Positions 1 through 63,249 of a stretch of 64,000 bases of DNA are shown piece after piece (the stretch's first letter is position 1; the number at the start of each line of letters is the position of its first letter). Both the position numbers and the translations under genes were made by a program. The notes under the pieces were generated by a model. It did not search any database and was not told where the DNA came from. It saw only the letters and a program-made list of their open reading frames with translations. The DNA comes from Macrostomum lignano (taxonomy: Eukaryota): positions 186,001-250,000 of the forward strand of contig NIVC01001178.1 of the NCBI GenBank assembly GCA_002269645.1. The letters run 5' to 3'.

Positions 1-612
1 CTCAGTTGCTGTGCCAGCCTCCCAGATCCTCAGTTGCTGGGCCAGCCTCCCAGGTCCTCAGTTGCTGTGGCACTAGTCTCCCAGATCCTCAGTTGCTGGG
101 CCAGCCTCCCAGATCCTCAGCTGCTGGGCCAGCCTCCCAGATCCTCAGTTGTTGGACCAGCCTCCCAGATCCTCAGTTGCTGGGTCAGCCTCCCAGGTCC
201 TCAGTTGCTGTGGCACTAGCCTCCCAGATCCTCAGTTGCTGGGCCAGCCTCCCAGATCCTCAGTTGCTGGGCCAGCCTCCCAGATCCTCAGCTACTGGGC
301 CAGCCTCCCAGGTCCTCAGTTGTTGGACCAGCCTCCCAGATCCTCAGTTGTTGGACCAGCCTCCCAGATCCTCAGTTGTTGGACCAGCCTCCCAGATCCT
401 CAGTTGCTGGGCCAGCCTTCAAGATCCTCAGTTGCTGGGCCAGCCTCCCAGATCCCCAGTTGCTGGGCCAGCCTCCTAGATCCTCAGTTGCTGTGCCAGC
501 CTCCCAGATCCTCAGTTGCTGGGCCAGCCTCCCAGATCCTCAGTTGCTGGGCCAGCCTCCCAGGTCCCAGTTGTTGGACCAGCCTCCCAGATCCTCAGTT
601 GCTGGGCCAGTC
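1..612. repeat. 28-bp minisatellite CCTCAGTTGCTGGGCCAGCCTCCCAGAT (receptor intron)
   Basis: Direct tandem copies; same family as 62010-63045. Confidence 0.95.
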
Positions 613-642
613 AGTTACTCTCCATCACACCCCACCCCGCAG

Positions 643-1108
643 CATCAACGGCATGATCGACCCTTCGCCGCCTCTGGTCCAAGGCACCAAGCGCTACTTC
701 GCTCCTGAGATCCTGGACTCGAGCCTGGACACCCGCTGCTTCGAGTCTCTGACCCAGGCTGACATGTACGCCTTTGCGCTGGTGGTGTGGGAGACTCTGC
801 TGCGCTGCCGTCTCCCAGACTCCGATCCCGTGCCCTATCGGCTGCCATTCAGTGAGCACGCTCCCAACGACCCGTCTGTCGAGCTGATGCAATCTCTAGT
901 CTGCGAACAGGCACTCAGGCCGACCGTATGCCAGCACTGGCTGACGAGTTCCTACTCATCAGCTGTTGTTGAAATGATGACCGAATGCTGGCAGCACAGG
1001 GCCAGCGCTCGGCTGACCTCCCTTCGGGTGAAGAAATGCCTTCGGGATTTGGACGAGTCGTTTCGTCGAAGTGATGTACAAGGAGCTGAGGCTGATTGCA
1101 ATTGTTAG
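643..1108 (+). CDS. Type I TGF-beta/activin/BMP receptor Ser/Thr kinase, last coding exon (upstream exons outside window)
   Basis: Acceptor ...ccaccccgcAG at 641-642. Motifs GTKRYFAPEIL, FESLTQADMYAFALVVWE, DPSVELMQSLVCEQALRP and ECWQHRASARLTSLRVKKCL match type I receptor kinase subdomains VIII-XI. TAG at 1106-1108. The ORF-track extension to 149 is intronic repeat. Confidence 0.9.
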
Positions 1109-1199
1109 GTTTTAATCAGCTTTAATAGTTATCATTCGACTGGGTGCTAGATGGATATAGATCATAATACACCGCTGTTTAGGTCATTGTATTCTTCAA

Positions 1200-1600
1200 T
1201 TCTAAAATCCCAACATCCCAAATCCCCATTTTTGAATCTCAAATCCCCATTCTCAAAATCCCAGATCCTCATTATCAATATCAAAGAACCCCATTATCGA
1301 AGTCCCAGATCCCATCCTTCGAATCCCAGATCCCCATTATCAATATCAAAGATCCCCATTATTAAAATCCCCAGATCTCAAAACTCCAGATCAACGTTAT
1401 CAAAATCCCAGATCCTCATTATCAAAATCCCAGATCCTCATTATCAAAATCCCAGATCTCCACTCTCAAAATCCCAGATCCTCATTATCAAAATCCCAGA
1501 TCCTCATTATCAAAATCCCAGATCTCCACTCTCAAAATCTCAGATCCACATCCTCAAAATCCCAGATCCCCATCCTCAAAGTCCCAGATCCCAATTCTAT
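1200..1600. repeat. Degenerate ~22-bp array CAAAATCCCAGATCCTCATTAT
   Basis: Tandem copies downstream of the receptor stop. Confidence 0.85.
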
Positions 1601-2319
1601 TCTAGTCTAATCCCCTAAACGATCTCAAGTCCTAAACACCATGGTTGCCTTTGTAGTAAAAGTGCATATTTTGTTATGTATTAATAATTGTTTTATTAAC
1701 TGTAGTAAGAATTGCACAGCGCACTTGCCTTGCTCCGATTACAAAGTTAATCTTAGTTTTCCAGCTGTGCCCTTTTTCAATTATTTATGTTTAATTTCTT
1801 CAAATATACATCTTTCAACTTCACAATGACTGTAGACTAAATTACGAAAAAATATATAATTCTTTTATTCTACTTCAAGTAGCTAAAATGTTTATTTTAT
1901 GCCAACTTGTTATTACTGCTTGATTTTTACTACTAATGTTCAGGTTCATTAGTAGAATAGCTGGGTTTTTTCTCTGTAAAGTATAGTAGTATCTGATTGT
2001 TAATCAGAACTTGTGCTGTTGCAATACTTATATTACACTTTCTCCTGCATATTGTGCATTAATGATAACTTGAGCAGGTTTTTAAATTAAATATTTAACT
2101 GCGGCCTTTCACTGATCATTAGGCAACTGTTTTGTACATAATTGTCTTCTTTTATTCAATGTTTTATTAAGTTCTGTTTTTATATCTAAACTGGTTATAA
2201 TGATGTATCTATATGCTTTTGTTTGTATCACCTGAAGATACCACCGCCTTAATAATATATGACATATATCCATATATACTCATTTTTATCGATTTTAAAA
2301 TAGACTTGGAATCTTTTTA

Positions 2320-3275
2320 TTGTGGTCAAAGTTGGGGTCATTTTAAGGTCAAGTAATCGAAGGCCAAATGTTAACTGAAGGTCAAAGAATCATGGCTTAA
2401 GGTCGCATAAAGTCAATTGGAGTTACAGTTTGAGGTCTTATGAAGGTCAGGGGGTTGTAGGGTTTGGAAGGAAGGGGTTGTAGCCTAGTGGTCAGAGCGT
2501 CGGACTCTCGACGCTCGGTTGTTGGTTGTCGGTTGTTGGTTCGATTCTTGACCCACTGGAACAATTTATGTTCTTAAGCAAGACACTTAACTCTGAATTG
2601 CTTCAGTTCAATCAATTATTATTATTATGAAGGTCAAGGAATCACAGCTTAGGGTCATGTGAAGGTCAAACAATTGCAGGTTAACGTTGTATGAAGGTCA
2701 AAGAATCACAGTTTAAGGTCATATAAAGGTCAAACAATCATAACTTAGGGTCTTATGAAGGTCAAGCAATCATAGCTTAGGGTCATGTGAAGGTCAAACA
2801 ATCATTGCTTAGGGTCTTATGAAGGTCAAGCAATCATAGCTTAGGGTCATGTAAAGGTCAAACAACCGCAGTTTAAGGTTGTATGAAGGTCAAAGAATCA
2901 CAGGTTAAGTTCATATGAAGGTCAAACAATCATAGCTTAGGGTCATATGAAGGTCAAGCAATTATAGCTTAGGGTCATGTGAAGGTCAAACAATCACAGC
3001 TCACAGGACTGAAGCAGCACATGACTGCTTGAGTCATGTGAAGGTCAAACAATCGCAGGTTAAGGTTGTATGAAGGTCTAAGAATCACAGGTTAAGGTCA
3101 TATAAGGGTCAAACAATCATAGCTTAGGGTCTTATGAAAGTCAAACAATCATAGCTTAGGGTCATGTGAAGGTCAGAGAATCACTGGTTAAGGTCATGTG
3201 AAGGTTAAAGAATCACTGGTTAAGGTCTTTATAAAAGTCAATGAGTCACAGCTCTGGGTCATATGAAGGTCAAAA
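2320..3275. repeat. 32-bp array GAAGGTCAAACAATCATAGCTTAGGGTCATAT
   Basis: About 28 degenerate units upstream of ATG5. Confidence 0.9.
2470..2610 (+). mobile_element. tRNA-derived SINE family A, 3'-truncated copy inside the AGGTCA array
   Basis: GGGGTTGTAGCCTAGTGG (A box), GGTTCGATTC (B box), then CTTAAGCAAGACACTTAACTCTGAA. Same head as the copies at 18.6 and 32.4 kb. Confidence 0.75.
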
Positions 3276-3309
3276 ATTACAATTTATTGTCGTATAAGGG
3301 TCACACGCC

Positions 3310-3337
3310 ATCCTGCACCCCCGCCAACGCCCCGCAG
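3310..3337 (+). promoter_or_regulatory. Candidate spliced-leader trans-splice acceptor of ATG5
   Basis: catcctgcacccccgccaacgccccgcAG resembles the window's other C-rich CGCAG acceptors. It is in phase 0 with ATG5, and no upstream donor or ATG-bearing exon was found. Confidence 0.6.
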
Positions 3338-4538
3338 ACGACCCCGGACTCTATTCAACGCCAGGTGTGGGACGGCAAGCTGCCTGTCTGTTTCGTTCTG
3401 CCCGAAGACCCAGACGTGCCGCCGCTCTACTCGCTGGTGCCTCGAGTCGGCTACTTCCCCGCTCTGCTGGACCGGCTCCGGGCGCACCTGTCGCGGCACG
3501 CCGGAATTGACGAGGACTCCCCAGGTGCTCAACAGCTTTGGCTTCGCAGCGCCGGTCGTCCACTTCGCTGGCACCTACCAGTCGGCCTCTTGTACGATTT
3601 GGAACGACCGAAACCTCCTCCGTTGCCATGGGAAGTGGAGATTCGAACTCGCGACTTTCCAACTGACGAACTAGTATCCTTCGGACCTAATAACAGTTTG
3701 GAATCGTATTTTCTGTATTGCCTCAAGGAGGCGGACGCTTTGAAGCACCGGGCTCGGGTGATTAACGAGATGGGCGAGCGGGAGCATCGCCAGCTTTGGC
3801 AGGGCCTGCTGAATGATCAGTTCGATCAGTTCTCAGTTGTCAACCGGAAATTGATGGAAGGCGAAGCCAAGTACTTGCCGTTTCGTATCTATCAGCAGGA
3901 AGCCGATGGTAAGCGTGGGGAGAAGTGTCCTAAATTAATCCTAAGTATCGCTTCTTAAATCTCCATGCTACTGAGAATTGCCTTTTAATCTCACCTGAGA
4001 AACGCCCCTGCCTAAAATCTTACCTGAGAATCGCTCTGCCTCAAATCTCACCCGAGAATCGCTCTGCCTCAAATCTTACCTGAGAATCGCTCTGCCTCAA
4101 ATCTTACCTGAGAATCGCTCTGCCACAAATCTCACCTTAGAATCGCTCTGCCTCAAATCTCACCTGAGAATCGCTCTGCCTCAAATCTCACCTGAGAATC
4201 GCCCTGCCTAAAATCTCACCTGAGAATCGTCTTTAACCCCCTGCCATCCCGCAGGCGGCCTGTCTGTCCTGCAGTGCCTGGCCAAGCCTCACCGTGAGGA
4301 CTCAACTCCGTTGACCTTATCGGACCTATTAAGAATTTGTATGCCAAATTTCGCCGATCCGGTCACCTTGGCAACGCACGGCGTCTCGTTGCCAATGGAG
4401 ACGCCGTTGGCTTGGGCCTACGATAAGCTGGCTTATCCCGATAATTTCTTACACCTGGTGCTGCAGCCCAGCAGGTGCAACAGCGCCGGCGATGGCGAGA
4501 GCTCCGCTATGCAGCTTGACAGCTCAAGCGAATTCTGA
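3338..4538 (+). CDS. ATG5: Autophagy protein 5; exons 3338-3908 and 4255-4538; no cognate ATG found
   Basis: RQVWDGKLPVCF, PRVGYFP, PLRWHLPVGLLYD, CLKEADALKH (conjugation Lys, human K130 equivalent), ETPLAWAYDKLAYPDNFLH. Intron GTAAG at 3909 to cccgcAG at 4254 keeps phase 1. Confidence 0.93.
3985..4230. repeat. 28-bp array AAATCTCACCTGAGAATCGCTCTGCCTC (ATG5 intron)
   Basis: About 8-9 units. Confidence 0.95.
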
Positions 4539-4579
4539 CTGTGATATGATATGATAGATAGTCGATTATTGGGGGTTTC

Positions 4580-5140
4580 CTGTGTACATTTGGGTGTGTT
4601 GCTATGCTATTGCTAGGTACATTTTATGTGTACATTTAGGCTTGTATGTACATTTGAGTGTACACTTAGGCTTGTATGTACATTTGGGTGTACACTGTGG
4701 CTTTTATGTACATTTGGGTGTACACTGAGGCTTGTATGTACATTTGGGTGTAACACTGAGGCTTGTATGTACATTTGGGTGTACACTGAGGCTTGTATGT
4801 ACATTTGGGTGTACACTGAGGCTTGTATGTACATTTGGGTGTACACTGAGGCTTGTGTGTACATTTAGGTGTACACTGAGGCTTGTGTGTACATTTGGGT
4901 GTACACTGAGGCTTGTATGTACATTTTGGTGTACACTGAGGCTTGTATGTACATTTGGGTGTACACTGAGGCTTTTATGTACATTTGGGTGTACACTGAG
5001 GCTTGTGTGTACATTGGGGTGTGCACTGTGGCTTGTATGTACATGTGGGTTACATTAAGGCCTGTATCTGTACGTTTGAGTGTACATAAAGGCTTGGTTG
5101 TACATTTCAGTGTATTTTAAAGCTGATGTGTACATTTGGT
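4580..5140. repeat. 30-bp array GTACATTTGGGTGTACACTGAGGCTTGTAT
   Basis: Tandem copies just after the ATG5 stop. Confidence 0.95.
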
Positions 5141-5724
5141 TGCAAATTAAAGTTTGTATGTACGATAAGGTATTGCAGCCTTTGCAGACTTATTAGCATT
5201 GAAATTTAACGTCATCCAGACAGGCACTTGAGTGTTCGTGTGTAAATACCTGTGTCTGTGTTTGTGTGTGTCGTTTTTGCTTACGTTTGTCTGATGATTA
5301 TTCTGTTCTCCTGTCGGTCTGTCCGCTATAAACGCCGCAAATATTAGATGTTGTTCAGTATATTTTGTCAATTGTCCACGATTGTTGAACTTCAATTTAT
5401 AAAATATTTTTTAGCATGCATAGCACTTAAATTGGTGTCTTTCCAATCAATTTTGTAATTATATATATATAATGTACAGTACTGAATAGTGTTGTGTACT
5501 GCTATGATTTTCCAGGAACCCCTGTCTATGTCAGCTACTCGCATGATATGATAAACAGTTTCATTGAAGTAAAAGATACAATCATTTTAATTATGAAGCG
5601 TTTAGTAGCCTAATAAACGATAATAAATTATTATCATTATAAATACTGTTTGTACACACAAGCTCTTCATAAAAATGTTTTTAATTAATTTATTTATTTA
5701 TCAATAATATGCTGACAGTCTACT

Positions 5725-5845
5725 AAAAACTTCAGGAGTTCTAGTCTTGCTCAAGGGCACAAATTGTTCCAGTGGGATCGGGATCGAACCCCCCCCACCT
5801 TCTATTCGTGAGTCTGGCGCTCTAACAGGCTGCAAACCCCTTAAG
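5725..5845 (-). mobile_element. SINE family A, partial degenerate copy
   Basis: gctcaagggcacaaattgttccagtgggatcgggatcgaaccccc...gtgagtctggcgctctaac matches the 18.8 kb copy. Confidence 0.7.
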
Positions 5846-6736
5846 ACATTACAATATTCGTCATAAAACAGTTAAAACACAAAATTCGTTGTTTAATTTC
5901 TGATCGTGAACGAACAGTTGTTATTACGACCCATAATTTATTTTTTTGTTACTATAGGAGTCAAATTTATTATACAGAATATCATATAGTGAAGTATCGT
6001 TTTACTTTTACTAATAAGGTACATATATGTATAAGTACGCTATGAATGAAGCCGCAAAACAAGACGAAAAAACGCTTTTTTTGTTATATTTATTTACCTG
6101 TATTGGCTTGAATTTGCAGTGGAACAACTGCCCCCCCCCCAGGTTGAGGTGTTCCATCGGTCCCAAGCACTCCTGTAACTTTAGAGACCCCCTACAACTT
6201 TGAAGACACCCCAACAACCCACCCGTTAAAACCAAGAAACTTACATTAGCATAGACACAACTTAAACCTCAGACTCCCCTAAGCCCCGCCCGGACAGCAT
6301 TAAACCATCTTGGTTTCTAAAAACCATCTAAAACCCTCTGGACACACCCCTAAAACACACCAGAACCCCTGAAGCCCCTTTTGGACATCCCTAAACCCCT
6401 CGGACATCCCTAAAATCCCCGGACACCCCTGAAACCCCTCGGACACCCTAAAAAACCTTTAGACACCCTTGAAAGCCCCTGGACACCCCAAAAGCTTATA
6501 ACCCTATAAAAATTAAATCCAACCTAAACTGCTTTACGATGGCCGAATTGAACCACTAACAGAGGTGAATAAAAGTACAAAACAAGGACAAAAACGCAGA
6601 GCTAATTTTGTTTTTTCTGACAATAGAGAGCTGACAGAACCTTATTTAATAAGATCATTTGATATTTTAGAAAAACACGTACTACATATAGTACTATTGA
6701 GATTCAGTAGTCTGGACGATTCTATTATCTTAATTT

Positions 6737-24692
<17,956 letters not shown>

Positions 24693-29930: not shown

Positions 29931-30992
29931 TCAGTCAACCATGGAGTGAGAATTCTCCGATCGAGTCTGTTGCTGCTGCCGCCGCAGTTGCCTATCCTGA
30001 CTATAGGCCAGAGCCATCTGCCTTCGAGTGGCCTCAAATCGTTCAACATCGACCAGCCAGCCCTGATAGTCAGCTGGCAATCCGATGGAGTAGTGCTGAT
30101 GGCAGGGCAGTCCGAGCACCTCCGTCAGCATGTACGGCTTCAGCCAGCCAACCAGCGATGTGTGCCCGAATGTGTAAGCGCCGCGCTGATGATAGAACAG
30201 CACTCCATCTAGCTGGGTTGGCGAGAGATTCAGGTGATGCATCATATTGAAATTTGGGTGTGTTATCATAGAGACAGGAGCCATGTGAACTTCAAGCGAA
30301 ATTGTCACACAACCGGTCAGAGACATTGCTGCCCATTACGCCGACTCCCCTGAGCAGGCACACAAGCGCGCGGATACGTAGGCAGTCATATGCATAGGCA
30401 CACACTTACACAGGAGTGCACAGTGGCCCTAACTTTATTTATCGTTAGGCATGTACACTTTACTGCGCCTTAAGGGGGTTGGCCCTCAATACCGTTAATT
30501 GCACGAGCAGAGCCAAGCCGAGATTCCAATTTAGTCCAACATGAGTGTGACTGCACTTGGAATCGAGCCTGGACCGCTGGCGTATCACAGCGCCGCGCTA
30601 GGCCAGTATAATTATACCATCGTTGCGTTACAGTAGGAAAATAATAAAAATTTTAACAGTAAAAAGAAGAATTATAACAAACCCTATTTCTAAAAATCTT
30701 CCTAAGAAGGCTTTCACTCACCGGGAAGGGCGGCTGCAACGTCAGGAATTCCGCCAGACACTCTCGCTGGCAGGAGTGCGACTCAACAATGAGAAACGGA
30801 TGTCGATTTTTTGGTGTTCGTCGGCAAACGTTCGGCGCCGATTCGACAAAGTTGGTCTCCAGCCAGTGGAAGCGGAGGGACGTCTAAGGAAGAAACAAAT
30901 AATGACAGTGTTTTTTTAGTTTCAAATTGAAACCAATGAATAGTTTAGCAGTTCTAAGCCAGTACGATTGCCGATTTGGCTGACAGACAGAC

Positions 30993-31035
<43 letters not shown>

Positions 31036-34000
31036 CAGAATCAGCCTCAGAAAACACAGAATCAGCCTCAGAAAACACAAAATCAGCCTCAGAAACACAG
31101 AATCAGCCTCAGACACACAGAATCAGCCTCAGAGACAGAATCAGCCTCAGAGACAGAATCAGCCTCAAACACACAGAATCAGCCTTAAACACACAGAATC
31201 AGCCTCAGACACACAGAATCAGCCTCAGACACACAGAATCAGCCTCAGACACACAGAATCAGCCTCAGACACACAGAATCAGCCTCAGAGACAGAATCAG
31301 CCTCAGACACACAGAATCAGCCTCAGAGACAGAATCAGCCTCAAACACACAGAATCAGCCTCAAACACACAGAATCAGCCTCAAACACACAGAATCAGCC
31401 TCAGAGACAGAATCAGCCTCAAACACACAGAATCAGCCTCAAACACACAGAATCAGCCTCAGACACACAGAATCAGCCTCAGAGACACAGAATCAGCCTC
31501 AGAGACAGAATCAGCCTCAAACACACAGAATCAGCCTCAGACACACAGAATCAGCCTCAGAGACACAGAATCAGCCTCAGACACACAGAATCAGCCTCAG
31601 AGACACAGAATCAGCCTCAGAGACACAGAATCAGCCTCAGACACACAGAATCAGCCTCAGACACACAGAATCAGCCTCAGACACACAGAATCAGCCTCAG
31701 AGACACAGAATCAGCCTCAGACACACAGAATCAGCCTCAGAGACACAGAATCAGCCTAAGAGACACAGAATCAGCCTCAGACACACAGAATCAGCCTCAG
31801 ACACACAGAATCAGCCTCAGATACACAGAATCAGCCTCAAACACACAGAATCAGCCTCAGACACACAGAATCAGCCTCAGAGACACAGAATCAGCCTCAG
31901 AGACACAGAATCAGCCTCAGAGACACAGAATCAGCCTCAGACACACAGAATCAGCCTCAGACACACAGAATCAGCCTCAGATACACAGAATCAGCCTCAA
32001 ACACACAGAATCAGCCTCAGACACACAGAATCAGCCTCAGACACACAGAATCAGCCTCAGAGACACAGAATCAGCCTCAGACACACAGAATCAGCCTCAG
32101 AGACACAGAATCAGCCTCAAACACACCAGGTCACCTCAGTATCGTAGAGCTGCAGGTCTCTCCAGTGCATGATGTCCAACACGTGGAAGCTGCTGGTGTC
32201 CCAGATGCAGTCCAGCACTGTCAGGCCCGCCCTAAACTGGCGGCAGCCGCCAGGCAGCTCAGACGGGAAGGTCATGATGCAGCGGCCTCGACGATCGAAA
32301 GTCTTGGTGATGCCCTGCCAATTCGCGCATTGAAGCGTCAGGATGGTGGCATATTCAGTCTTAGGAGAAAGCGCCATATTGAGACAGCTGGCTTGAAACA
32401 GTAGGGGCTATAGTCAGCCTAGTGGTTACATTGTCGGACTCACGACTGAAAGGTCGGGGGTTCGATTCTCGACCCACCCACTCAGAAGAAATTGTATCCT
32501 TGAGCAAGAAACTTAACTCTGCATTAGCTGGGGTAATTGAGGGTGTGTGTGGCGACCCCCCAGTCCTTGGACTGAACAGCCGTACGCAGCCTTCAGATGC
32601 GCCGCGCAATCTGCGGCTGAGCTGTCGGTTGCACATCTGGCCCAATTAGGGCAGGTGTAATCAATTTTTAGTATTATTAATAGCTTAAAATACTAACAAA
32701 CGCAGCTATATTTTGAGTCATTGAGACAATTATGAGCACAAAAATAGCAGTCAATTATCTTAAGATTACGTTATACATGGAAGTACATCCCACCACAAGT
32801 AACCTTTCTTCAGCAACCATTTTAAAGAAAATAGAATCTTTCATCTCACTTTCTACGACACTAGAATCTTCTATATCAATTTCTAAGAAACTGAATTCTT
32901 CCATCTCGATTTCTAAGAAACTGAATTCTTCCATCTCAATTTCTAAGAAACTGAATTCTTCCATCTCATTTTCTTAAAAACTGAATTCTTCCATCTCGAT
33001 TTCTAAGAAACTGAATTCTTCCATCTCAATTTCTAAGAAACTGAATTCTTCCATCTCAATTTCTAAGAAACTGAATTCTTCCATCTCAATTTCTAAGAAA
33101 CTGAATTCTTCCATCTCAATTTCTAAGAAACTGAATTCTTCCATCTCAATTTCTAAGAAACTGAATTCTTCCATCTCAATTTCTAAGAAACTGAATTCTT
33201 CCATCTCAATTTCTAAGAAACTGAATTCTTCCATCTCAATTTCTAAGAAACTGAATTATTCCATCTCAATTTCTAAGAAACTGAATTATTCCATCTCAAT
33301 TTCTAAGAAACTGAATTCTTCCATCTCAATTTCTAAGAAACTGAATTCTTCCATCTCAATTTCTAAGAAACTGAATTCTTCCATCTCAATTTCTAAGAAA
33401 CTGAATTCTTCCATCTCAATTTCTAAGAAACTGAATTCTTCCATCTCAATTTCTAAGAAACTGAATACTTCCATCTCGATTTCTAAGAAACTGAATTCTT
33501 CCATCTCGATTTCTAAGAAACTGAATTCTTCCATCTCAATTTCTAAGAAACTGAATTCTTCCATCTCAATTTCTAAGAAACTGAATTCTTCCATCTCAAT
33601 TTCTAAGAAACTGAATTCTTCCATCTCAATTTCTAAGAAACTGAATTCTTCCATCTCAATTTCTAAGAAACTGAATTCTTCCATCTCAATTTCTAAGAAA
33701 CTGAATTCTTCCATCTCAATTTCTAAGAAACTGAATTCTTCCATCTCAATTTCTAAGAAACTGAATTTTCCATCTCAATTTCTAAGAAACTGAATTATTC
33801 CAACTCAATTTCTAAGCAACTGATTTATTCCAACTCAGTTTATAAGAAACTGATTTATTCCAACTCAGTTTATAAGAAACTGATTTATTCCAACTCAGTT
33901 TATAAAAAACTGATTTATTCCAACTCAGTTTATAAGAAACTGATTTATTCCAACTCAGTTTATAAGAAACTGATTTATTCCAACTCAGTTTATAAGAAAT

Positions 34001-34951
34001 TGATTTATTCCAACTCAGTTTATAAGAAACTGATTTATTCCAACTCAGTTTATAAGAAACTGATTTATTCCAACTCAGTTTATAAGAAACTGATTTATTC
34101 CAACTCAGTTTATAAGAAACTGATTTATTCCAACTCAGTTTATAAGAAACTGATTTATTCCAACTCAGTTTATAAGAAACTGATTTATTCCAACTCAGTT
34201 TATAAGAAACTGAATTTTCCAACTCAAATTTCTAAGAAACTGAATTTTCCATCTCAATTTCATGAAACTGGATTTTCCATCTCAATTTCTAAGAAACTGG
34301 ATTTTCCATCTCAATTTTTAAGAAACTGAATTCCTATCTTAATTTCTAAGAAAAAAGAATTTTGTTATCCTCATTTCAAAGAAAATGGACCGTAGATCTT
34401 TTTCATGTAACCTTACTAACCTTAGCAGCCACAACTAGCACTCGCTTGCCCTGCGGACAGAGTTTCAATAAGAATTCAGTTTCCAAATTATCCGGTATTT
34501 CCATCAACCATTCGGACAGCATCAGCTGATTTCGATAATTCTTGCCGGGTCGACGTTTCCGCTGAAGGCTCTCGGCTGTATCGTCGGCTGTGAGCTCCTC
34601 GGTGGCCAGAGTTTCGTTAGTATCGGCCACGGATACTAAATCATCGTCAAGATCGTCATTTTCATCGACATCTTTAGTAGTCCAATCGTCCTCGGCAAGA
34701 CGTCGGGCCAGCGACATTGCATTAAATCGACGCTGCTTTTGCAACTCCAATTCTTTTCGACGTCGTTCAACCTGATCGAGGGCCGCCCGGCCGCGGTTCT
34801 TGTACATGGACTGGTGCCGGTCCATGGCGCAACTGACGGGCACCGCGTGTCGAGTATTGGCTGCAGCCAGACTCTGACACAAATCTGAGACTGCATCGGG
34901 ATCCGATGGATGCGGCGACGACTGATTGATTGACGTCTGATTTTCAGCCAT
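29931..34951 (-). CDS. SNUPN: Snurportin-1 (m3G-cap snRNP import adaptor), 4 exons, about 384 aa; alternative in-frame ATG at 34984
   Basis: Exons 34951-34421, 32314-32135, 30883-30722, 30212-29931, all phase 0 GT-AG. IBB-like ERRRKELELQKQRR...ARRLAEDDW; YRNQLMLSEWL; CPQGKRVLVVA; LDCIW; LDIMHWR; DGVLFYH; LVGWLKPYM. Confidence 0.93.
30290..30606 (-). mobile_element. tRNA-derived SINE family B in SNUPN intron 3
   Basis: Minus strand TGGCCTAGCGCGG...GGCTCGATTCCAAGTGCAGTC...AAATTGGAATCTC...GAGGGCCAACCC. Homologous to 42470-42720. Confidence 0.65.
30980..32122. repeat. (ACAG)n followed by 18-20-bp array ACACAGAATCAGCCTCAG (SNUPN intron 2)
   Basis: Fills most of the intron. Confidence 0.97.
32401..32635 (+). 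mobile_element. SINE family A copy in SNUPN intron 1
   Basis: GCCTAGTGG...GGTTCGATTCTCGACCCA...CCTTGAGCAAGAAACTTAACTCTG...GGCGACCCCCCAGTCCTTGGACTGAACAGCCGTACGCAGCC. Internal deletion relative to the 18.6 kb copy. Confidence 0.8.
32860..34345. repeat. 30-bp array TCAATTTCTAAGAAACTGAATTCTTCCATC with a variant block at 33830-34210 (SNUPN intron 1)
   Basis: About 49 units; related to 28690-29780. Confidence 0.97.
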
Positions 34952-35522
34952 TGATTGACAGGTTTCTGAACTGTCAACTGTCATGAAATTCAAGCAACGT
35001 GAGGCAATCTCAGTAGCTTCTCTGCATGATTAAACTACCAACCAAGCTGAGTTGTCAGCAATTCAACAATCAGTCTACCAAACTATTCGATAAGAACTAA
35101 CAAAAGTATGGTTCTAATATATATATTTTAAAATCACAATAAAGTAAATATATAACGGTTTCTTTATTCCTATCCTACACAATTATAATCATAGATTACA
35201 GAAGACAATCAAATTGAAATAAAGCAACAATGACGAATGAAACTCCAAACTTCCTGTCAGGAACTAGCTAGCATATATCTCAAGATTTATTTACAATTCC
35301 TGTTTGAACAACAATTTTAAAGCATTTTAATCATTACGTTGTGCCACTGCAACAAGCGATCAATAGATTTCTTCATGCCTTATTTTGATGTCAGTGTTAA
35401 ATCACCGAAACTTTAATACCTTTTACCAGTTAAACCAATGCTGTTTTACAGATGTTTCAGAACAAAATGCCGTCATCAAGTGTTTTAAAGACTACTGGAT
35501 AGTTTAAAAAGCAACTATAGAC

Positions 35523-37415
35523 TTAGGCAATCTTCTCAGCTACAGCCTGTACAAACACTCGATCAGCTCGAACACCTTCCCGCCTATTAATTGTCTCCCT
35601 GAGCACGTAGCAGCACTGCAGCACTCGCAGACCGGCACCTTGGCACAGCGATTCCAACTCTTCAACAGTGAAGAAATACGAACAGGTGCCGTCCTGACGC
35701 ACGTAGCGCGACTCGGCTAGCTTGGTGCCTCGACCAAACCTCAGCTGGCAGTGGTCGTGCAAGCCGTAGTCTCTAATTAACAATCGACCACCCGAGCACA
35801 ACAGGGCTGCGGCATTAGCAACTGCGGTTGGCATTTCCGCGGGTTTAATAGCCGACAGTACAAACACCATAGCGGCTAAGTGAACGCTGCTTTCATTCCA
35901 ATCGTCCAGATGCCCAGCAGCCAACAAGACAAAATCAGACGAAGTTAAATCGGCGCAGAATGCTTTGAACCGATTGTCATTCTCGTCAGTTCGTTCTCGT
36001 TGCCAACGTTGCACAGCCATGTTCACTGCCCGAGGAGAGAAATCGCAAGCCAACAATCGCAGATTGGGCAGCTCAGCTAGCAGCGGCATGGCAAAGTTGC
36101 CAACGCCGCAGCCCAGCTCAGCCAGGATCAGCGGCTGGTCGCCACCATCGTTTTGCCTACCAGCCAGCTCTACAAACTCCCTCTTAGTCCAATGCCGATC
36201 GCGAAAGAATCTATCGCCATTGCGATTGTAGAATTTGTCCCAATTACGCTGCACCTCTGAGTCAATTTTATTGGCACGAAAATCGTTCACTAGTTGCTGA
36301 CTGGACAGCAACTGTTGCTCCGTTTCTGTCAGCGGACGAGGATCGCGGGTTTTATTCTGGAAAGATGACTCGTCATCAGCTTGGTCTTTTTGATGGTCAT
36401 CAGCTTCGGCCTCTGTTGGTGATGATGTCTCGCGAGTCTGGTTCTCAGAAGGCGTCTCAATCTGGACATCAGTCTGACTAGAGTCAATCTCTTTCTCTCT
36501 ATGCTGGTCGGCAGCATCAGCCTCCCTTACTGATGTAGATTCGCGAGTCTGAATCTGGAAAGATTCATCGTGTTCCTCATCATCAGCATCATGACAATCA
36601 TCGCTACGCTCTCCGCCCAGCTGCTCCTCTAACTCCTTGGCCAGCTCTCCATACGACAGGCGCCTACGGTTATCACTTTCGGCGGCCAAACTAGCAAGAT
36701 GACGCGACTGCACTTCCTTAACATCATTAGCATCGCGACAAGCAGCATAGGCGTCTAACAAGTCGGCATTGAGCTGACGAAATGCTTCACCCCAGCCGAA
36801 TCTTGATAGCACAATATCGGCATCGGAGTCCAATCCCACTATGGATAACCCAGCAGCGAATGCTTCTACGCAAGATAGATTAATCGGCTTGCCATAATTG
36901 ACAGGATTAGCAGCTACCAAGTAAGGAAGCAGTCGTTCATTGTGACACTTCATACGCGACCAGGGAGTCGATTGCAACTGTGCCCAGGAGCAATCCACTA
37001 CGGCTAGGCCTCCCCGACGAACGATTTCGGCATCGGCTGGAGAAATCTGCTCCGTAGCAACTGGCGTCAAAACTACGCCGCCAAAACGACTACCAAGTCG
37101 AAGTTCCGACACTAATCCCAGTAGGGTCAGACGACGTCCGGTGCACTTTTTCGGATCGCAATGACCTAGATCCCACATTGCTAAGGGTATGGAAAGCTTC
37201 GATTGATTCAAATCTTCGTCGCTACTCTTGCCATTGTCGGATGCAGCTGTTGCGCCTGCAATTCTATGCGCTAAGCCTTCATTATCACTGCCATTGTCAG
37301 TTTTGTCGTGTCGGTAAACCCGTCTGTCCCGATTCTGGGCTCGTTTCTGCTCAGAGGCTTTGCGTTTTCCAGCGGCGGTATTCTTTGATCTATTGCCGCG
37401 TTTCTTATTGTCCAT
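35523..37415 (-). CDS. TSR3-METTL6: Intronless 630-aa ORF: TSR3 (18S rRNA aminocarboxypropyltransferase), acidic linker, then METTL6-like tRNA m3C32 methyltransferase
   Basis: N-half: LAMWDLGHCDPKKCTG, VVDCSWA, RLLPYLVAANPVNYGKP, LSCVEAFAA, FGWGEAF. C-half: NWDKFYNRNGDRFFRDRHWTKREF, ELGCGVGN, CDFSPRAV, FVLSAI, RDYGLHDHCQLRF, YVRQDGTCSYFF, RVFVQA. No stop and no Met between the two domains. Confidence 0.92.
   Translation of the reverse strand: MDNKKRGNRSKNTAAGKRKASEQKRAQNRDRRVYRHDKTDNGSDNEGLAHRIAGATAASDNGKSSDEDLNQSKLSIPLAMWDLGHCDPKKCTGRRLTLLGLVSELRLGSRFGGVVLTPVATEQISPADAEIVRRGGLAVVDCSWAQLQSTPWSRMKCHNERLLPYLVAANPVNYGKPINLSCVEAFAAGLSIVGLDSDADIVLSRFGWGEAFRQLNADLLDAYAACRDANDVKEVQSRHLASLAAESDNRRRLSYGELAKELEEQLGGERSDDCHDADDEEHDESFQIQTRESTSVREADAADQHREKEIDSSQTDVQIETPSENQTRETSSPTEAEADDHQKDQADDESSFQNKTRDPRPLTETEQQLLSSQQLVNDFRANKIDSEVQRNWDKFYNRNGDRFFRDRHWTKREFVELAGRQNDGGDQPLILAELGCGVGNFAMPLLAELPNLRLLACDFSPRAVNMAVQRWQRERTDENDNRFKAFCADLTSSDFVLLAAGHLDDWNESSVHLAAMVFVLSAIKPAEMPTAVANAAALLCSGGRLLIRDYGLHDHCQLRFGRGTKLAESRYVRQDGTCSYFFTVEELESLCQGAGLRVLQCCYVLRETINRREGVRADRVFVQAVAEKIA
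36357..36368 (-). promoter_or_regulatory. Candidate internal splice acceptor at the start of the METTL6 domain
   Basis: Minus strand TCATCTTTCCAG|AATAAAACC. Phase 0 with the ORF (37415-36356 = 353 codons). Confidence 0.5.
36555..36566 (-). promoter_or_regulatory. Second, duplicated candidate internal acceptor in the TSR3-METTL6 linker
   Basis: Minus strand GAATCTTTCCAG|ATTCAGACT. Phase 0 (37415-36554 = 287 codons). Confidence 0.35.
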
Positions 37416-38889
37416 TGTTGTTGGTTTTTATTAGCTTTGATGCAACAATCAGAAATTTCAAATACGGTCTTAGGTTTAATAAAACTAAAGAAAGTTCATC
37501 CATCCACCTATACTAATTGTCTAAATCACTATACTAAAAATGAGTTCTTTCTCATACGTTTAATTGTTAGCAAAAACGATTCAACCGATTTTTACTTAAC
37601 TTGCACCGTTCGATCAGGAATCTTTAGGATTCAGCACCTTGTGACCTGTCATGGGAATCAATAATTTTGCTTCAGGCGCCAAAATATAGCGTATTCGGCG
37701 CCAAAATAAGCGCCTCTCTGCGACGCAAAAATGAGTTGCCTGCCTGCGGCGCCAAAATTTGCCGCTTTCAATTGTTTTGTCTATGGCCAAGCCTATAGCC
37801 TAGCAGTGGATCAAAATACTATAGTGGAGCTAGCTGAATAACTTAATAATTGCTTTTTACGCTCATACTACTGAACAGAGAGTACTTTTGCTACTCTCTA
37901 CTTTGAACAGTGTCAACTAAAAATGGTTTGAGTCAAGCTAATTATATAGTTACCATTTGTACGAGTATGTGTATATTCCACCACACTGACATAACCAATT
38001 AGCACTCGAAATTAAAATTGTGAAAAAACTATTTGGCCTATCCTACTTACTCTTGCTTTAAAGGCAAGAAACGCTAATCTCACTACTGAATAGATAATAG
38101 ATTATAGCAAATGAGTAGCATATGTAAGTGCTACTAATGAGACCTATACTAACGTTACCATATGATTTACTAAAAAAACAGAAAGATAAAATAAATAACT
38201 CAGTTTATATTTTTGCAGATAAATTTGTGCATATTATATATTGTATATGCAAATGGCAGTTAACACGAATGCGAGAAACGTTTAACATTAACTGTCATCG
38301 ATGTAAACAATTCCTGACAACAGTAAAACAATAACAGAGATTAAATTTTCGTTCTGGATACACTGGCTCGCCCATATCGCTGCCTGAGAAAGATTTACAA
38401 AGGAAATAGTAGGCATAATTACATAAGTACACATACTTTGTGTGTATATAAGAGAAGAGAAGAGTGTAAAACCTAACGATTATTATGCTACTAAAAGTAT
38501 TTAGTAAGTATATATACGCCTATATGTATAACCGCACTCGTTTGAATTTCAAAGTCCAATTAATTGAAGCACCGCAATAAACAAAACGTTTTGTGTCGAT
38601 TAGCTATTCAAATTTTTTAGTCTGAAGTAAGTATATGTACCAGAATCGATGCCTGCCTGATTAATAGAAATGATTTAAACTCAACACACCAATAAATATG
38701 CCTGATATTGCTGATATAAATAAAATGAATTAATCATCAAATTATTAGTGAATGGGCAGTAGGTGAATGGGCAGTGATTCGGTGAATCGGCAGTAGGCCG
38801 AAGTCACCGAAGGCAGCCCACAGCCCGATGAAAACGGTACCAAGAAGGCCAAGAAGCTTCGTTGAATAGTTGCTGCAGGTCTAACTCTA

Positions 38890-39475: not shown

Positions 39476-42365
39476 TCACAACCAAGCTACAACAACGGTC
39501 ACATTATCGGTTGACCCGGCAGCCACAGCCATATCAATCAGAGCATTAGCAGCTGCAGCTTCGCTCTTAGTTGAGTCATCAGCTTGCATAGCAACTAGCG
39601 CGGCGGCTGCATCGTTAGGCGCCACAGCGTCCCACAGCCCATCGCTAGCCAGCACTACGCAGACATCTTTACTTCCGTCTGCATCTTCGCTGAGTTTCAA
39701 TTGCCGATGCACGACTTCCGGTTCAGGTGTTGATCCTGTAACTCCGCGATCGCCCAGACTGCGAGTGACAGCCAGCACGCCATTCAGTCTTGGCGGGTTG
39801 CCGTCCATCACGAAGCCGCCAGCAGATTCCACTCGGCTACGCTCAGCCGGGATGCTGGGCCTATGCGGCGGCGCTGTCAGCTGGGTTGCTAGGCCGTTGC
39901 TATGCACTAGCCAGGCTTCCGAGTCGCCAGCCCAGGCTACAGTTAACTGATCACCGGATAAGATGCACACCTGTTTTTTTAAGAGTGAAGACATTATACT
40001 TACATGTTTAATCCGCTACCAGCAGTTAGGCATCCCAACTTAGGATGCAACATTTCAAACAGAAAAGGATTTGCGGGGATATTTGGGATTATATAACCAT
40101 TTGTATGGATATCTGAGATTACGTAGGGACGCTTGGCATTATAAAGGGATTTTTAGGGATATCTGGGATTACATACGGATTTTGGGGGACATTTGGGATT
40201 AGATAGGGATTTGTAGGGATGTTTGGAAGTAGATGGGATGAGATATTTGGGGTTAGATAGGGATTCTTAGGATATTTGGGATTAGATACGGATTTGTAGG
40301 GATTTTTGGGATTAGGATGGATATCGGGGATAAGATAGGGATTGTAGGGATATTTGGGATTAGATAGGAATTTGTGAGGACATTTGAGATTAGGGGATTT
40401 CTAGAATATAATTAGGATTAGACAGGGATTTGTGGGGATATTTGGGATTAGATACGGATTTGTAGGGATATTTGGGATTAGGATGGATATCGGGGATAAG
40501 ATAGAGATTGTAGGGATATTTGGGATTAGATAGGGATTTGTAGGGATATTTGGGATTAGATAGGGATTTGTAGGGATATTTGGGATCAGGATGAATATCG
40601 GGATATCGGAGATTACCATAAGAAAAACACTGAAGTATTTCCGCACAGTTGGTACACAAATAAAATTTTCATGCCCCGAACAAACCGTGCAAGTGGCTCC
40701 GCCCGATGCTCCGCATTGGCTAGCGGCTTCGCCTAATTTCGCGTCGGCATCGACAAACGTTCGACGAAGTCTTTCAACCAATTCTGACTTGCTATCAGAG
40801 TCGCTATGAGAAGAATAAGACAGGAACAATGGCAGCAGATAGGAAGCGGCCAAGTCGGCTCCGTCGCTGCCCCCGTGACCGTCCAGAACGGCCAAGAAAT
40901 TCGCCTGGCTATTGGCGTCCGGCGAGAATGCCGACACCAATAGGCGATCTTCATTGCGTCGGCCGCGATTTTTTGCGCTTGCCTGTTTGTTTGACGAGTT
41001 TGAGAGACTTTTCTTTCATAATTTAATCTCTAGTCCAATTCTTATGCTTGTTTGGGATACTGTCTTAACCTCTGTTCTACCCCAGTTTGATACTCTGTTC
41101 TACCCCAATTCGATACTCTGTTCTACCCCAATTCGATACTCTGTTCTACCCCAATTCGATCATCTGTTCTACCCCAATTTGATCATCTGTTCTACCCCAA
41201 TTTGATCATCTGTTCTACCCCAATTCGATACTCTGTTCTACCCCAATTCGATACTCTGTTCTACCCCAATTTGATCATCTGTTCTACCCCAATTCGATAC
41301 TCTGTTCTACCCCAATTCGATACTCTGTTCTACCCCAATTCGATACTCTGTTCTACCCCAATTCGATACTCTGTTCTACCCCAATTCGATACTCTGTTCT
41401 ACCCCAATTTGATCATCTGTTCTACCCCAATTCGATACTCTGTTCTACCCCAATTTGATCACCTGTTCTACCCTAATTTGATCACCTGTTCTACCCCAAT
41501 TTGATCATCTGTTCTACCCCAATTTGATCATCTGTTCTACCCCAATTTGATCATCTGTTCTACCCCAATTTGATCATCTGTTCTACCCCAATTCGATCAT
41601 CTGTTCTACCCCAATTCGATACTCTGTTCTACCCCAATTCGATACTCTGTTCTACCCCAATTTGATCATCTGTTCTACCCTATTTTGGTCATCTGTTGTA
41701 CCCCGATTTGATCCTCTGTTTTCCCCATTTTAATATGTTATCGATCATAGATCCATTCTATATTTTTCCATATCCAATCGCTTGTTTACAGATATTCTGT
41801 TCTACAGCTCTCTACTTAATATTACCAACGCACAAAACCGAAGGCTCACATGAGACACAAGCCGAGCGCAGCCACGCCTAACCACTGTTGGCGCATCAAC
41901 ACTATCATGTCTGGGCGTTGCCTTATCGCCATTATCATCATCATTGCTACTAATGTTTCTTTCTTCCATGTCTCCAAGGCAACTGCATAATTTCTCTTTG
42001 GCATCACAGTCGGCCAGCTCGCGAACAACTTCGCCAACTAATCTCTGAACAGCTCGATACTCAGGCTTAGCAGTTTCATTATCTTGGCTAATAAAGCGAT
42101 TAGTGAACTGAGATCCAAGCAAATATTGCATTAGCTTAGCTTGAGCTCTCCAACCCATTGTTGAATCATTATTGGCATCGGATTGCACTACTTGCAATAG
42201 GTAAGGCGTCAATAAGTCTAGAATTTGTTTAGCAAAATAGCATTGAGCAGAATGAGCATCGGCGAAGCATTGAAATGGAGGTCGAGACACTGCGGACGGA
42301 TCAGCAAGAGATTCAACTGCCTGTTGGGCTGCTGAGACAATCAACTCTGATGGACAGCTTGACAT
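39476..42365 (-). CDS. PP2C/PPM-family phosphatase, PPM1E/PPM1F-like, 3 exons, about 443 aa
   Basis: Exons 42365-41826, 40982-40686, 39970-39476, all phase 0. KNRGRRNEDR, AVLDGHGG, GATCT, AWAGDS, HRPSIPAERSRVESAGG, RLNGVLAVTRSLGD, LASDGLWD, GSTDNVTVVV. Extra N-terminal region as in PPM1E/F. Confidence 0.88.
40070..40615. repeat. Degenerate ~30-bp array GGGATATTTGGGATTAGATA... (PP2C intron 2)
   Basis: Tandem copies. Confidence 0.88.
41070..41710. repeat. 23-bp array TTCTACCCCAATTCGATACTCTG (PP2C intron 1)
   Basis: Tandem copies. Confidence 0.95.
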
Positions 42366-61311: not shown

Positions 61312-63249
61312 TCATTCGTTCGGATTGAGTTTATAAGCCACCAAAGAGTCCACCTTGTGAATTGAGGTGGTAAACGATTTCAATTTCACTTCGACAGAAT
61401 TGGACACCAGCTGAGGTCCAGTATCGGCCCATTCGCCGCTGGGCAATTCCGTGTTCTTGTCGCAGTAAATCAGCAGTTCAAAACTGCCTGTAATTTTCAA
61501 AAAAAAAATCCTTCAGCTTAACAAACTATTTAGTTAAACTCCGAGACAACAAAGCAAATTAAAAAAACGACAAACTTACACTGGAAATCCAGAGCCGGTA
61601 GAAAGGTGACGCTGGCCACAATTTGGCGGATAACATCGGCGATGTCTTTCTTCACTTGCTTCTCGTCTTTCTCTGCCACCATTCTATTTTATGAAAAATT
61701 GGTTCAAACTACTTATAGTGGATAAGTAAAAATATCGGATTTTTGATTGAAAAAATCACACCGGCTTACTGAAAGTAGTATAAAAGACAACCTCAATACT
61801 CACGGTTCATCGGACTTAGCAGATTTGTCGCATTTAATGTCGAACTGCCAGCGTTCGACCACTTCCTGGGTGGACACTCGACGAATAACAAGCACCAGCT
61901 TCTCAATCACCAGGTCGCTGAGCCATTCTGAGTGGTTTTTTACAATAAAATCTTTAGGTGTTTATTTCAGGCGTGAAGGACGGAAACATGTACAGTCATC
62001 TCTGGAGTTTTTAGGATCTGGGAGACTGGCCCAGCAACTGAGGAGCTGGGAGGCTGGCCCAGCAACTGAGGAGCTGGGAGGCTGGCCCAGCAACTGAGGA
62101 GCTGGGAGGCTGGCCCAGCAACTGCGGATCTGGGAGGCTGGCTTAGCAACTGGGGATCTGGGAGGCTGGCCCAGCAACTGAGGATCTGGGAGGCTGGCCC
62201 AGCAACTGAGGATCTGGGAGGCTGGCCCAGCAACTGAGGATCTGGGAGGCTGGCCCAGCAACTGAGGAGCTGGGAGGCTGGCCCAGCAACTGCGGATCTG
62301 GGAGGCTGGCTTAGCAACTGGGGATCTGGGAGGCTGGCCCAGCAACTGAGGATCTGGGAGGCTGGCCCAGCAACTGAGGATCTGGGAGGCTGGCCCAGCA
62401 ACTGAGGATCTGGGAGGCTGGCCCAGCAACTGAGGAGCTGGGAGGCTGGCCCAGCAACTGCGGATCTGGGAGGCTGGCTTAGCAACTGGGGATCTGGGAG
62501 GCTGGCCCAGCAACTGAGGATCTGGGAGGCTGGCCCAGCAACTGAGGATCTGGGAGGCTGGCCCAGCAACTGAGGATCTGGGAGGCTGGCCCAGCAACTG
62601 AGGATCTGGGAGGCTGGCCCAGCAACTGAGGATCTGGGAGGCTGGCCCAGCAACTGAGGATCTGGCAGGCTGTCTGCCCAGCAACTGAGGATCTGGGAGG
62701 CTGGCCCAGCAACTGAGGATCTGGCAGGCTGTCTGCCCAGCAACTGAGGATCGGGGAGGCTGGCCCAGCAACTGACACTCTGGGAGGCTGGCCCAGCAGC
62801 TGAGGATCTGGGAGGCTGGCCCAGCAACTGAGGATCGGGGAGGCTGGCCCAGCAACTGACACTCTGGGAGACTGGCCCAGCAGCTGAGGATCTGGGAGGC
62901 TGGCCCAGCAACTGAGGATCTGGCAGGCTGGCCCAGCAACTGAGGATCTGGGAGGCTGTCCTAGTAACTGAGGATCTGGGAGGCTAGAACAGCAACAGGA
63001 TCTGGGAGGCTGGCGCAGCAACTGAGGATCTAGGGTGGGGGTGCTCAACAACAAAACTTGGGGTGACAGTTGATCTATTCGATACAGCTAGAAGTAACTC
63101 ACGCTTCACTTGTTCCAATATCTTGATCAAATAGGCCTTAAGCTTCTCATCCGATGTCACAAGAACAGTGAGGCCATACTTCTGCTCAAACGAAAAGGAT
63201 TCGCTTGGATAAATGCCACGTTGGTAAAGGATGGAATTCACTGCATAAT
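61312..63249 (-). CDS. MAD2L1: Mitotic spindle checkpoint protein MAD2 (HORMA); exons 63249-63103, 61927-61804, 61683-61580, 61487-61312; first exon not found in window
   Basis: VNSILYQRGIYPSESF..QKYGLTVLV, KLVLVI, ERWQFDI, IRQIVASVTFLP, CSFELLIY, GPQLVSNSVEVKLKSFTTSIHKVDSLVAYK. Phases 1, 1, 2, 1 are consistent. Confidence 0.95.
62010..63045. repeat. 28-bp array CTGGGAGGCTGGCCCAGCAACTGAGGAT (MAD2 intron)
   Basis: Reverse complement of the array at 1-612. Confidence 0.97.

Follow-up and report, generated by a model that had tools for sequence, protein, structure and literature searches.

The stretch of Macrostomum lignano DNA considered here, called the window, comprises 64,000 nucleotides (nt) of contig NIVC01001178.1 (assembly GCA_002269645.1, positions 186,001 to 250,000 of the forward strand), and the gene of interest in it is ATG5, the first coding exon of which begins at its second codon. 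Positions are those of the window; the record coordinate on NIVC01001178.1 is the window coordinate + 186000. As a whole the window consists of GC-rich exons amid AT-rich DNA that is dense with minisatellites. ATG5 is encoded on the plus strand by two exons, placed by Pfam and by alignment to the human protein. Exon 1 (3338..3908) holds codons 2-191 and the first base of the next codon. It is followed by a phase 1 intron (3909..4254, donor GTAAG, acceptor CCCGCAG), in which Tandem Repeats Finder locates a 28-bp minisatellite (3987-4229), and by exon 2 (4255..4538), which encodes the UblB domain and ends in the stop codon TGA at 4536-4538.

Once spliced, the exons form an uninterrupted frame of 284 codons that aligns to ATG5 across the exon junction. 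All three Pfam domains of the family are found above cut-off (PF20638, PF20637 and PF04106; ATG5_UblA, ATG5_HBR and UblB), giving the order UblA, helix-rich region, UblB. With human ATG5 (chain 4gdk_B) phmmer yields E=7.6e-62 over residues 2-264; K130, the lysine that accepts ATG12, is conserved and aligns with the K in LKEADALKH. The closest relatives in the homologue search are mollusc, insect and nemertean proteins with 42-43% identity; that search returned no Macrostomum or close-flatworm protein, and a metagenome scan with the 5' end of exon 1 gave zero matches.

An exhaustive search of representative sequences gave one 100% match, the older gene model P0244 (UniParc/MetaClust, UPI0007A18E81; 1035 residues), for which exact look-up gives no contig on record. 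This model strings together an unrelated N-terminal part, a TGF-beta-type receptor kinase, ATG5 to residue 262, and open reading frames (ORFs) antisense to CtBP. It spans the equivalent of about 1-12300 (+) of the window, including the same last exon of the receptor gene (643..1108) that precedes ATG5 here. The ATG5 part differs from that of the window by M220L and A224T, which indicates that P0244 derives from another genomic copy. Judged from its sequence, the receptor-ATG5 fusion in P0244 is rated an artefact, and the model can serve as an example of a missing ATG misleading ab initio prediction. The protein collections searched hold no correct M. lignano ATG5, only this chimera of receptor, ATG5 and antisense frames.

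The missing start codon and the sequence before it

ATG5 in the window is without a usable genomic start codon, a splice acceptor being followed at once by codon 2 as the first codon of exon 1; this is confirmed by several features of the sequence. Translation of 3149-3910 in the ATG5 frame reads ...Q*VTALGHMKVKNYNLLSYKGHTPSCTPANAPQ|TTPDSIQRQVWDGKLPVCF..., and both the translation and the ORF list place an in-frame TGA, closing the frame upstream, at 3242-3244 (+). The sole upstream in-frame ATG (3263-3265, +) was said in the initial annotation to lie inside the last unit of a minisatellite, and translation together with Tandem Repeats Finder puts it in the last, degenerate unit of a 32-bp repeat. 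A start at this codon would add 25 residues, MKVKNYNLLSYKGHTPSCTPANAPQ. Because further ATGs occur 5' of it (3241, 3196, 3164 and 3134), the ATG at 3263 would be the first AUG only if transcription started within 3244-3262. The first 290 nt of exon 1 are free of ATGs in all frames, and the first in-frame ATG of the exon, at 3770 (codon 145), is past the conjugation lysine, so that the start codon must originate upstream of 3338.

The amount of missing sequence can be read from the position of a conserved Trp. The motif W.G..P is present near the N-terminus in 93 of the 120 best ATG5 homologues, and 81 of these 93 (87%) have its Trp at index 11 (Met + 10 residues). In the window exon without Met the same Trp is at index 10, and therefore exactly one codon, Met, is missing. 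Residue 2 of Met plus the exon pairs with residue 2 of human ATG5 (phmmer, 4gdk_B). The collinearity of AUG plus exon with the human N-terminus, asserted in the initial annotation, is thus borne out by the alignment and by the Trp count alike. The position occupied by the initiator codon in the orthologues is taken by the acceptor CAG (3335-3337).

That CAG is the end of a C-rich tract (3298..3337, +; 53% C) which closes in the 3' splice site CCCGCAG (heptamer 3331-3337) and is a putative acceptor for trans-splicing of the spliced leader (SL). This acceptor immediately precedes codon 2, in phase 0, as expected from the earlier description of a C-rich cgcAG acceptor in phase 0 before the first conserved codon. 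The GC fraction changes abruptly along this sequence, from 0.25 (3258-3297) to 0.75 (3298-3337) and then to about 0.6 in exon 1. CCCGCAG occurs 9 times in the window, where 3.5 are expected. The nine include the acceptors of the last receptor exon (642) and of the ATG5 intron (4254), both fixed by protein homology, as well as the ATG5 start site (3337). The exon in P0244, on another genomic copy, also starts exactly at TTPDS. Phase 0 alone would occur by chance in 1/3 of cases, but a random acceptor would far less often fall exactly between codons 1 and 2 of a protein that has one fixed N-terminal length in 87% of its relatives, and the coincidence is therefore beyond chance. A generic pyrimidine-tract score, uninformative for these C/G-rich local acceptors, was discarded in favour of the CCCGCAG comparison. 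A 10-nt identity to the SL (CAATTTATTG; 3280-3289, +), 48 nt 5' of the acceptor, was considered as a relic or pairing site and is probably due to chance; five such 10-mers occur in the window.

The gene upstream on the same strand encodes a TGF-beta/activin type-I-like receptor kinase. Its last coding exon (643..1108, +; stop 1106-1108) was recognized by the C-lobe of Pfam PK_Tyr_Ser-Thr/Pkinase, with the acceptor CCCGCAG at 636-642 (+) found in the heptamer scan. The receptor is not annotated, and a homologue search with this exon gave zero matches. The distance from the receptor stop to the ATG5 acceptor is 2229 nt, in agreement with the 2.2 kb between co-oriented genes noted initially. The AT-rich intergenic sequence (1109..3337, +) would comprise the receptor 3' untranslated region (UTR) and the presumed ATG5 outron. 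Within it are a 22-bp minisatellite (1211-1596), a tRNA-derived element resembling a short interspersed nuclear element (SINE; about 2461-2625, +) and the 32-bp minisatellite (2626..3281; 20.7 copies of the unit TATGAAGGTCAAACAATCACAGCTTAGGGTCA by Tandem Repeats Finder), which ends 56 nt before the acceptor and contains ATGs and stops in all frames. About 1200 of the 2229 nt are tandem repeats or SINE, and the repeat-adjusted distance is about 1 kb or less with the receptor 3' UTR still included. For M. lignano operons the criterion in use is an intergenic distance <1 kb after repeat subtraction (PMC8629364), and from the spacing it is plausible that ATG5 is a downstream operon gene of the receptor. 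Most trans-spliced M. lignano genes are outside operons, and trans-splicing in this species needs no operon.

Two features of these repeats can be recorded for their own sake. A second SINE-like element (about 5744-5830, -) is inverted relative to that at 2461-2625 (+), so that the pair flanks ATG5; the arms 2538-2584 and 5744-5790 are 81% complementary, and ARAGORN calls a tRNA at neither. The 32-bp minisatellite contains 26 direct [AG]GGTCA motifs, 13 of them as TGAAGGTCA, and all 15 occurrences of TGAAGGTCA in the window are on the plus strand. We take these [AG]GGTCA motifs to resemble nuclear-receptor half-sites.

A search for a cis-spliced micro-exon in 1109-3337 had been recommended in the initial annotation. 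It was carried out by scanning every ATG in that interval whose open frame ends at a phase-0 GT, and it disclosed no consensus donor in the right phase. The sole GT[AG]AG, at 1705, shares its phase with none of the ATGs upstream of it. The candidates in phase 0 all have off-consensus donors, namely ATG|GTTGCC (1641) and ATGAAG|GTCAA(A/G) in minisatellite units including that at 3263. The donors verified in the window, GTAAG in ATG5 and GTGAG in three introns of CtBP, match the published cis donor motif GT[G/A]AG; about 35% of M. lignano cis donors deviate from it (PMC8629364). No homology or coding signal was found upstream of 3338.

Source of the initiator codon

The SL of M. lignano is 35 nt long, CGGTCTCTTACTGCGAAGACTCAATTTATTGCATG, and ends in ...TTGCATG (...CAATTTATTGCATG) (PMC8629364). 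An AUG at the 3' end is common to every flatworm SL (PMC12582326). About 30% of M. lignano genes are trans-spliced, or 38.8% in the first annotation (PMC8629364, PMC5730564), and for human-conserved genes the share is 45.3% (PMC8629364). Acceptors used in trans end in CAG, the top motif [T/C]TNCAG accounting for about 44% of sites, and an acceptor without an upstream cis donor directs trans-splicing (PMC8629364, citing Conrad et al. 1993). Since no consensus in-phase cis donor occurs upstream, the SL ends in ATG and 45% of conserved genes are trans-spliced, an SL-donated AUG is the best explanation for the missing codon. The start codon of ATG5 is probably the AUG of an SL trans-spliced at 3337/3338.

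In the mechanism proposed, M. lignano ATG5 would have lost its genomic initiator, the 3' splice site CCCGCAG (3331-3337) now standing at the ATG position. Transcription of the pre-mRNA would begin at a promoter within the 2.2-kb spacer with its many repeats, or would continue into ATG5 from the receptor gene. With no matching 5' donor upstream, the acceptor is proposed to go to SL trans-splicing. Joining of the SL to 3338 would create ...UUGCAUG|ACGACC, read as AUG|ACG ACC CCG (in DNA form ...TTGCATG|ACGACCCCGG), and the terminal AUG of the SL would be in frame and the first AUG of the mRNA. The product would be MTTPDSIQRQVWDGKLPVCF..., a 285-residue ATG5 of canonical N-terminal length. An AUG placed before 3338 reads MTTPDSIQRQVW... 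and the frame is open to the stop at 4536-4538.

The initial annotation had claimed that translation of ATG5 depends on trans-splicing. The part of that claim which stands, as the best-supported reading, is that there is no usable genomic ATG and that an SL AUG restores the canonical N-terminus. That this acceptor is used in trans rather than in cis, and that the ribosome starts at the SL AUG, is what we infer from the sequence. Several observations weigh against it. The collections searched contain no M. lignano ATG5 transcript or standalone protein, only the chimeric P0244, and as the neighbouring receptor is unannotated too, expression of this copy is unproven. Most M. lignano genes are present in several copies, and the expressed copy need not be this one. 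The acceptor CCGCAG is without the T found at -5 in the top trans motif [T/C]TNCAG (a motif of about 44% of sites), and the context of the SL AUG is weak (U at -3). On paper there are also cis options with weak donors: ATG|GTTGCC at 1641-1643, ATGAAG|GTCAAA at 3263-3268, and GAT|GTACAA in the receptor.

Other sources of the start codon can be weighed against these same data. That an upstream (micro-)exon supplies the ATG and is joined in cis to the acceptor at 3337 is unlikely. The two candidates are ATG|GTTGCC at 1641-1643, which would contribute Met only and require a 1694-nt intron, and ATGAAG|GTCAAA at 3263-3268, which would contribute Met-Lys with a 69-nt intron. Both are in phase 0 and stop-free, and that at 1641 has the context ACCATGG and would yield exactly the canonical length. 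Their donors are off-consensus, in a species where about 35% of cis donors are so and in a window where all verified donors are GTGAG or GTAAG. About two occurrences of ATGGT are expected by chance per 2.2 kb, and the minisatellite units hold some 13 equivalent ATGAAG|GTCA sites, that at 3263 among them; the 3263 candidate would place the Trp at an offset of 12, found in 1 of the 93 homologues. The lack of homology or coding signal 5' of 3338 also counts against such an exon. It is very unlikely that splicing at 3337 does not occur and that translation starts at the ATG at 3263, giving an extension of 25 residues encoded partly by the minisatellite (MKVKNYNLL..., MKVKNYNLLSYK...). The ATG5 frame is indeed open from 3245 with this ATG in frame, and a few annotated ATG5 isoforms of other animals have long N-terminal extensions. 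However, the open frame continues for just 31 codons upstream, about the chance level, and the extension would consist of a repeat unit and a C-rich tract ending in the CCCGCAG acceptor typical of this locus. Other ATGs precede that at 3263 unless transcription starts in a 19-nt window, and the acceptor motif would have to fall on the canonical codon-1 position by coincidence.

Duplication of the genome provides for another explanation, in which this copy is a non-functional or untranslated duplicate that has lost its first codon, or uses a non-AUG start, while a different M. lignano copy with its own ATG supplies ATG5. M. lignano is a hidden polyploid with duplicated contigs and several copies of most genes (PMC8629364), the neighbouring TSR3-METTL6 gene exists in three copies, and no annotated ATG5 protein was found for this locus. 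On the other side, the two-exon ORF of 284 codons is intact, with its domains and key lysine conserved, and the second copy (P0244) shows two residue differences over 262, the same exon start and no ATG found by the predictor; this explanation is a shade less probable than initiation at 3263. A genuine fusion of ATG5 to the C-terminus of the receptor kinase, by cis-splicing of a donor at GAT|GTACAA (1075/1076), eight codons before the receptor stop, to 3338, is extremely improbable. It is represented by the in-frame junction ...DESFRRSD|TTPDSIQ... in the deposited 1035-residue model P0244 (UPI0007A18E81). That model is a plain ab initio chimera, with a garbled stretch in the kinase domain and a continuation into ORFs antisense to CtBP, and the donor GTACAA is off-consensus. 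A fusion of a membrane receptor to ATG5 is without precedent among 981 ATG5 relatives (E<=0.001), the matches listed being almost all of 200-350 residues.

An SL-donated AUG at 3337/3338 has consequences for annotation. If it is true, such genes would be dropped, truncated or fused to the gene next door wherever ORFs are called on transcripts already stripped of the SL, or where an ab initio predictor demands a genomic ATG. A more far-reaching version can be formulated, in which the ancestral ATG was replaced by the CAG acceptor, ATG5 is translatable only from SL-trans-spliced mRNA, autophagy capacity in a regenerating flatworm is thus dependent on trans-splicing, and the case may mark a whole class of conserved M. 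lignano genes that existing annotations overlook, label 'partial' or merge with adjacent genes, owing to removal of the SL ahead of ORF calling. Taken in its entirety, that version is unlikely.

Neighbouring genes and repeats

The initial annotation presented ATG5 as a second, independent case, in support of an SL-AUG model for METTL6. The METTL6 model does not hold, since METTL6 makes up the C-terminal part of a single TSR3-METTL6 ORF that begins with an ATG of its own; it is not an independent case beside ATG5. The ORF has 630 codons (35523-37415, -; ATG 37415-37413, stop 35525-35523), and the stop-to-stop frame (35526-37427, -; 634 codons) is identical (100%) to P0121. In the 634-codon frame the TSR3 part is recognized by Pfam Fer4_RLI and Ribo_biogen_C (residues 81-243) and the METTL6-type methyltransferase occupies 430-604 in the same frame. 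The same fusion is found in >25 cestode, trematode and monogenean proteins, whereas non-flatworm matches carry one part only. Annotated examples come from Schistocephalus, Mesocestoides, Spirometra, Schistosoma, Trichobilharzia, Opisthorchis, Clonorchis, Paragonimus, Fasciola, Echinostoma and Cichlidogyrus. M. lignano has the fusion as one coding sequence (CDS) in three copies, despite an annotation pipeline that cuts transcripts at SL peaks (PMC5730564). From these matches TSR3 (an 18S rRNA aminocarboxypropyltransferase) and a METTL6-type tRNA methyltransferase look like a flatworm-wide fusion of two RNA-modifying enzymes that use S-adenosylmethionine. A stand-alone METTL6 by way of the in-frame TTCCAG|AAT at 36357/36356 is possible on paper, and nothing requires it.

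The Met-started TSR3-METTL6 product is not on record by exact look-up. The deposited proteins are flagged 'partial' and start four codons upstream of the evident ATG (KPTTMDNKK...), immediately behind an in-frame TAA (37427, -); such starts indicate that CDS starts in the Mlig_3_7 assembly are driven by transcript ends and not by ATGs. The linker between the two parts (about 36330-36690) is acidic and internally repetitive.

Other genes on the minus strand are CtBP (8035-17620), with at least 6 exons, minisatellite-filled introns and its own ATG; a PP2C phosphatase (39476-42365), also with its own ATG, at 42365; and snurportin (29931-34981). To judge from their spacing and orientation, PP2C, TSR3-METTL6 and snurportin form a tight co-oriented minus-strand cluster that may be an operon. 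The snurportin CDS annotated by NCBI (394 residues) starts at an ACA at 34981, directly after a genomic ATG (34984-34982, -) and with no AG before it. The bases upstream of this CDS, AATTTCATG, resemble the 3' end of the SL, AATTTATTGCATG, and the trimming of SL reads may have produced this 5' boundary as an artefact. An in-frame acceptor-like site, CTGAG|ATT, is located 27 nt further upstream of the snurportin start. A MAD2-like gene at the end of the window was considered as a further start-codon test case and dropped for want of a definable 5' exon. Scanning the 64-kb window with Rfam and for tRNAs gave nothing, and no SL RNA gene is found in it.

The two ends of the window, at 1-610 (+) and 61965-63087 (-), carry oppositely oriented copies of one 28-bp minisatellite family (CTCAGTTGCTGGGCCAGCCTCCCAGATC). 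One copy is in an intron of the receptor kinase and the other beside the MAD2-like (HORMA) exon, both in the same orientation relative to the host gene. Long frames stay open in this family, and this repeat artefact swells the lists of ORFs.

Comparison with known cases of initiation in the spliced leader

Initiation at an SL AUG is not a new mechanism; it has been established in flatworms since 2006. In their work on schistosomes (Schistosoma mansoni/japonicum), Cheng, Cohen, Ndegwa & Davis (2006, J Biol Chem 281:733; Cheng 2006), as summarised in PMC9851317, reported 28% of the trans-spliced mRNAs of S. mansoni to have the SL AUG in frame and >40 complementary DNAs (cDNAs) to need it. The same is true of Echinococcus granulosus, as argued from N-terminus conservation, with this use conserved among Neodermata (PMC3510090). 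The ATG5 case is like these in that the SL ends in AUG, a phase-0 acceptor stands at the start of a conserved ORF, no genomic AUG gives the conserved N-terminus, and the argument is made from collinearity with orthologues. The earlier cases (Cheng 2006, PMC3510090) are from Neodermata, whereas M. lignano belongs to the Macrostomorpha, which are early-branching and free-living, and they were backed by SL-bearing cDNAs and reporter assays, whereas trans-splicing of ATG5 is deduced from DNA. According to the literature, SL-AUG initiation in vivo has been shown for schistosome mRNAs only. If confirmed, ATG5 would be a clean case, outside the parasitic flatworms, of a conserved housekeeping gene relying on the SL for its start codon, and would support SL-AUG initiation as ancestral in rhabditophoran flatworms. 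Its main value would be for annotation practice and in extending a known mechanism to a free-living, early-branching flatworm.

With the published work on trans-splicing and operons in M. lignano (Wudarski et al. 2017, PMC5730564; Ustyantsev & Berezikov 2021, PMC8629364) the present analysis shares the assembly used, Mlig_3_7, as well as the CAG acceptor, and ATG5 belongs to the conserved class (45% trans-spliced), with a co-oriented upstream gene and a repeat-rich spacer. In that work, by contrast, the SL was trimmed before ORF calling, and the ATG5 acceptor CCGCAG is not the top motif [T/C]TNCAG. The use of the SL AUG as a start codon is not discussed in the portion of the M. lignano trans-splicing text available (PMC8629364). 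ATG5, ATG7 and ATG12 are absent from the supplementary tables of two M. lignano transcriptome papers, and a literature search found no paper linking ATG5 with trans-splicing in flatworms.

The slORFs identified with slORFfinder (PMC9851317) have in common with ATG5 an ORF whose start codon is inside the SL. They are mostly begun by a near-cognate NUG in the SLs of nematodes, tunicates and kinetoplastids, and are often novel or alternative ORFs (PMC9851317). In contrast, the start codon proposed for M. lignano ATG5 would be a canonical AUG that completes the ORF of a conserved housekeeping gene.

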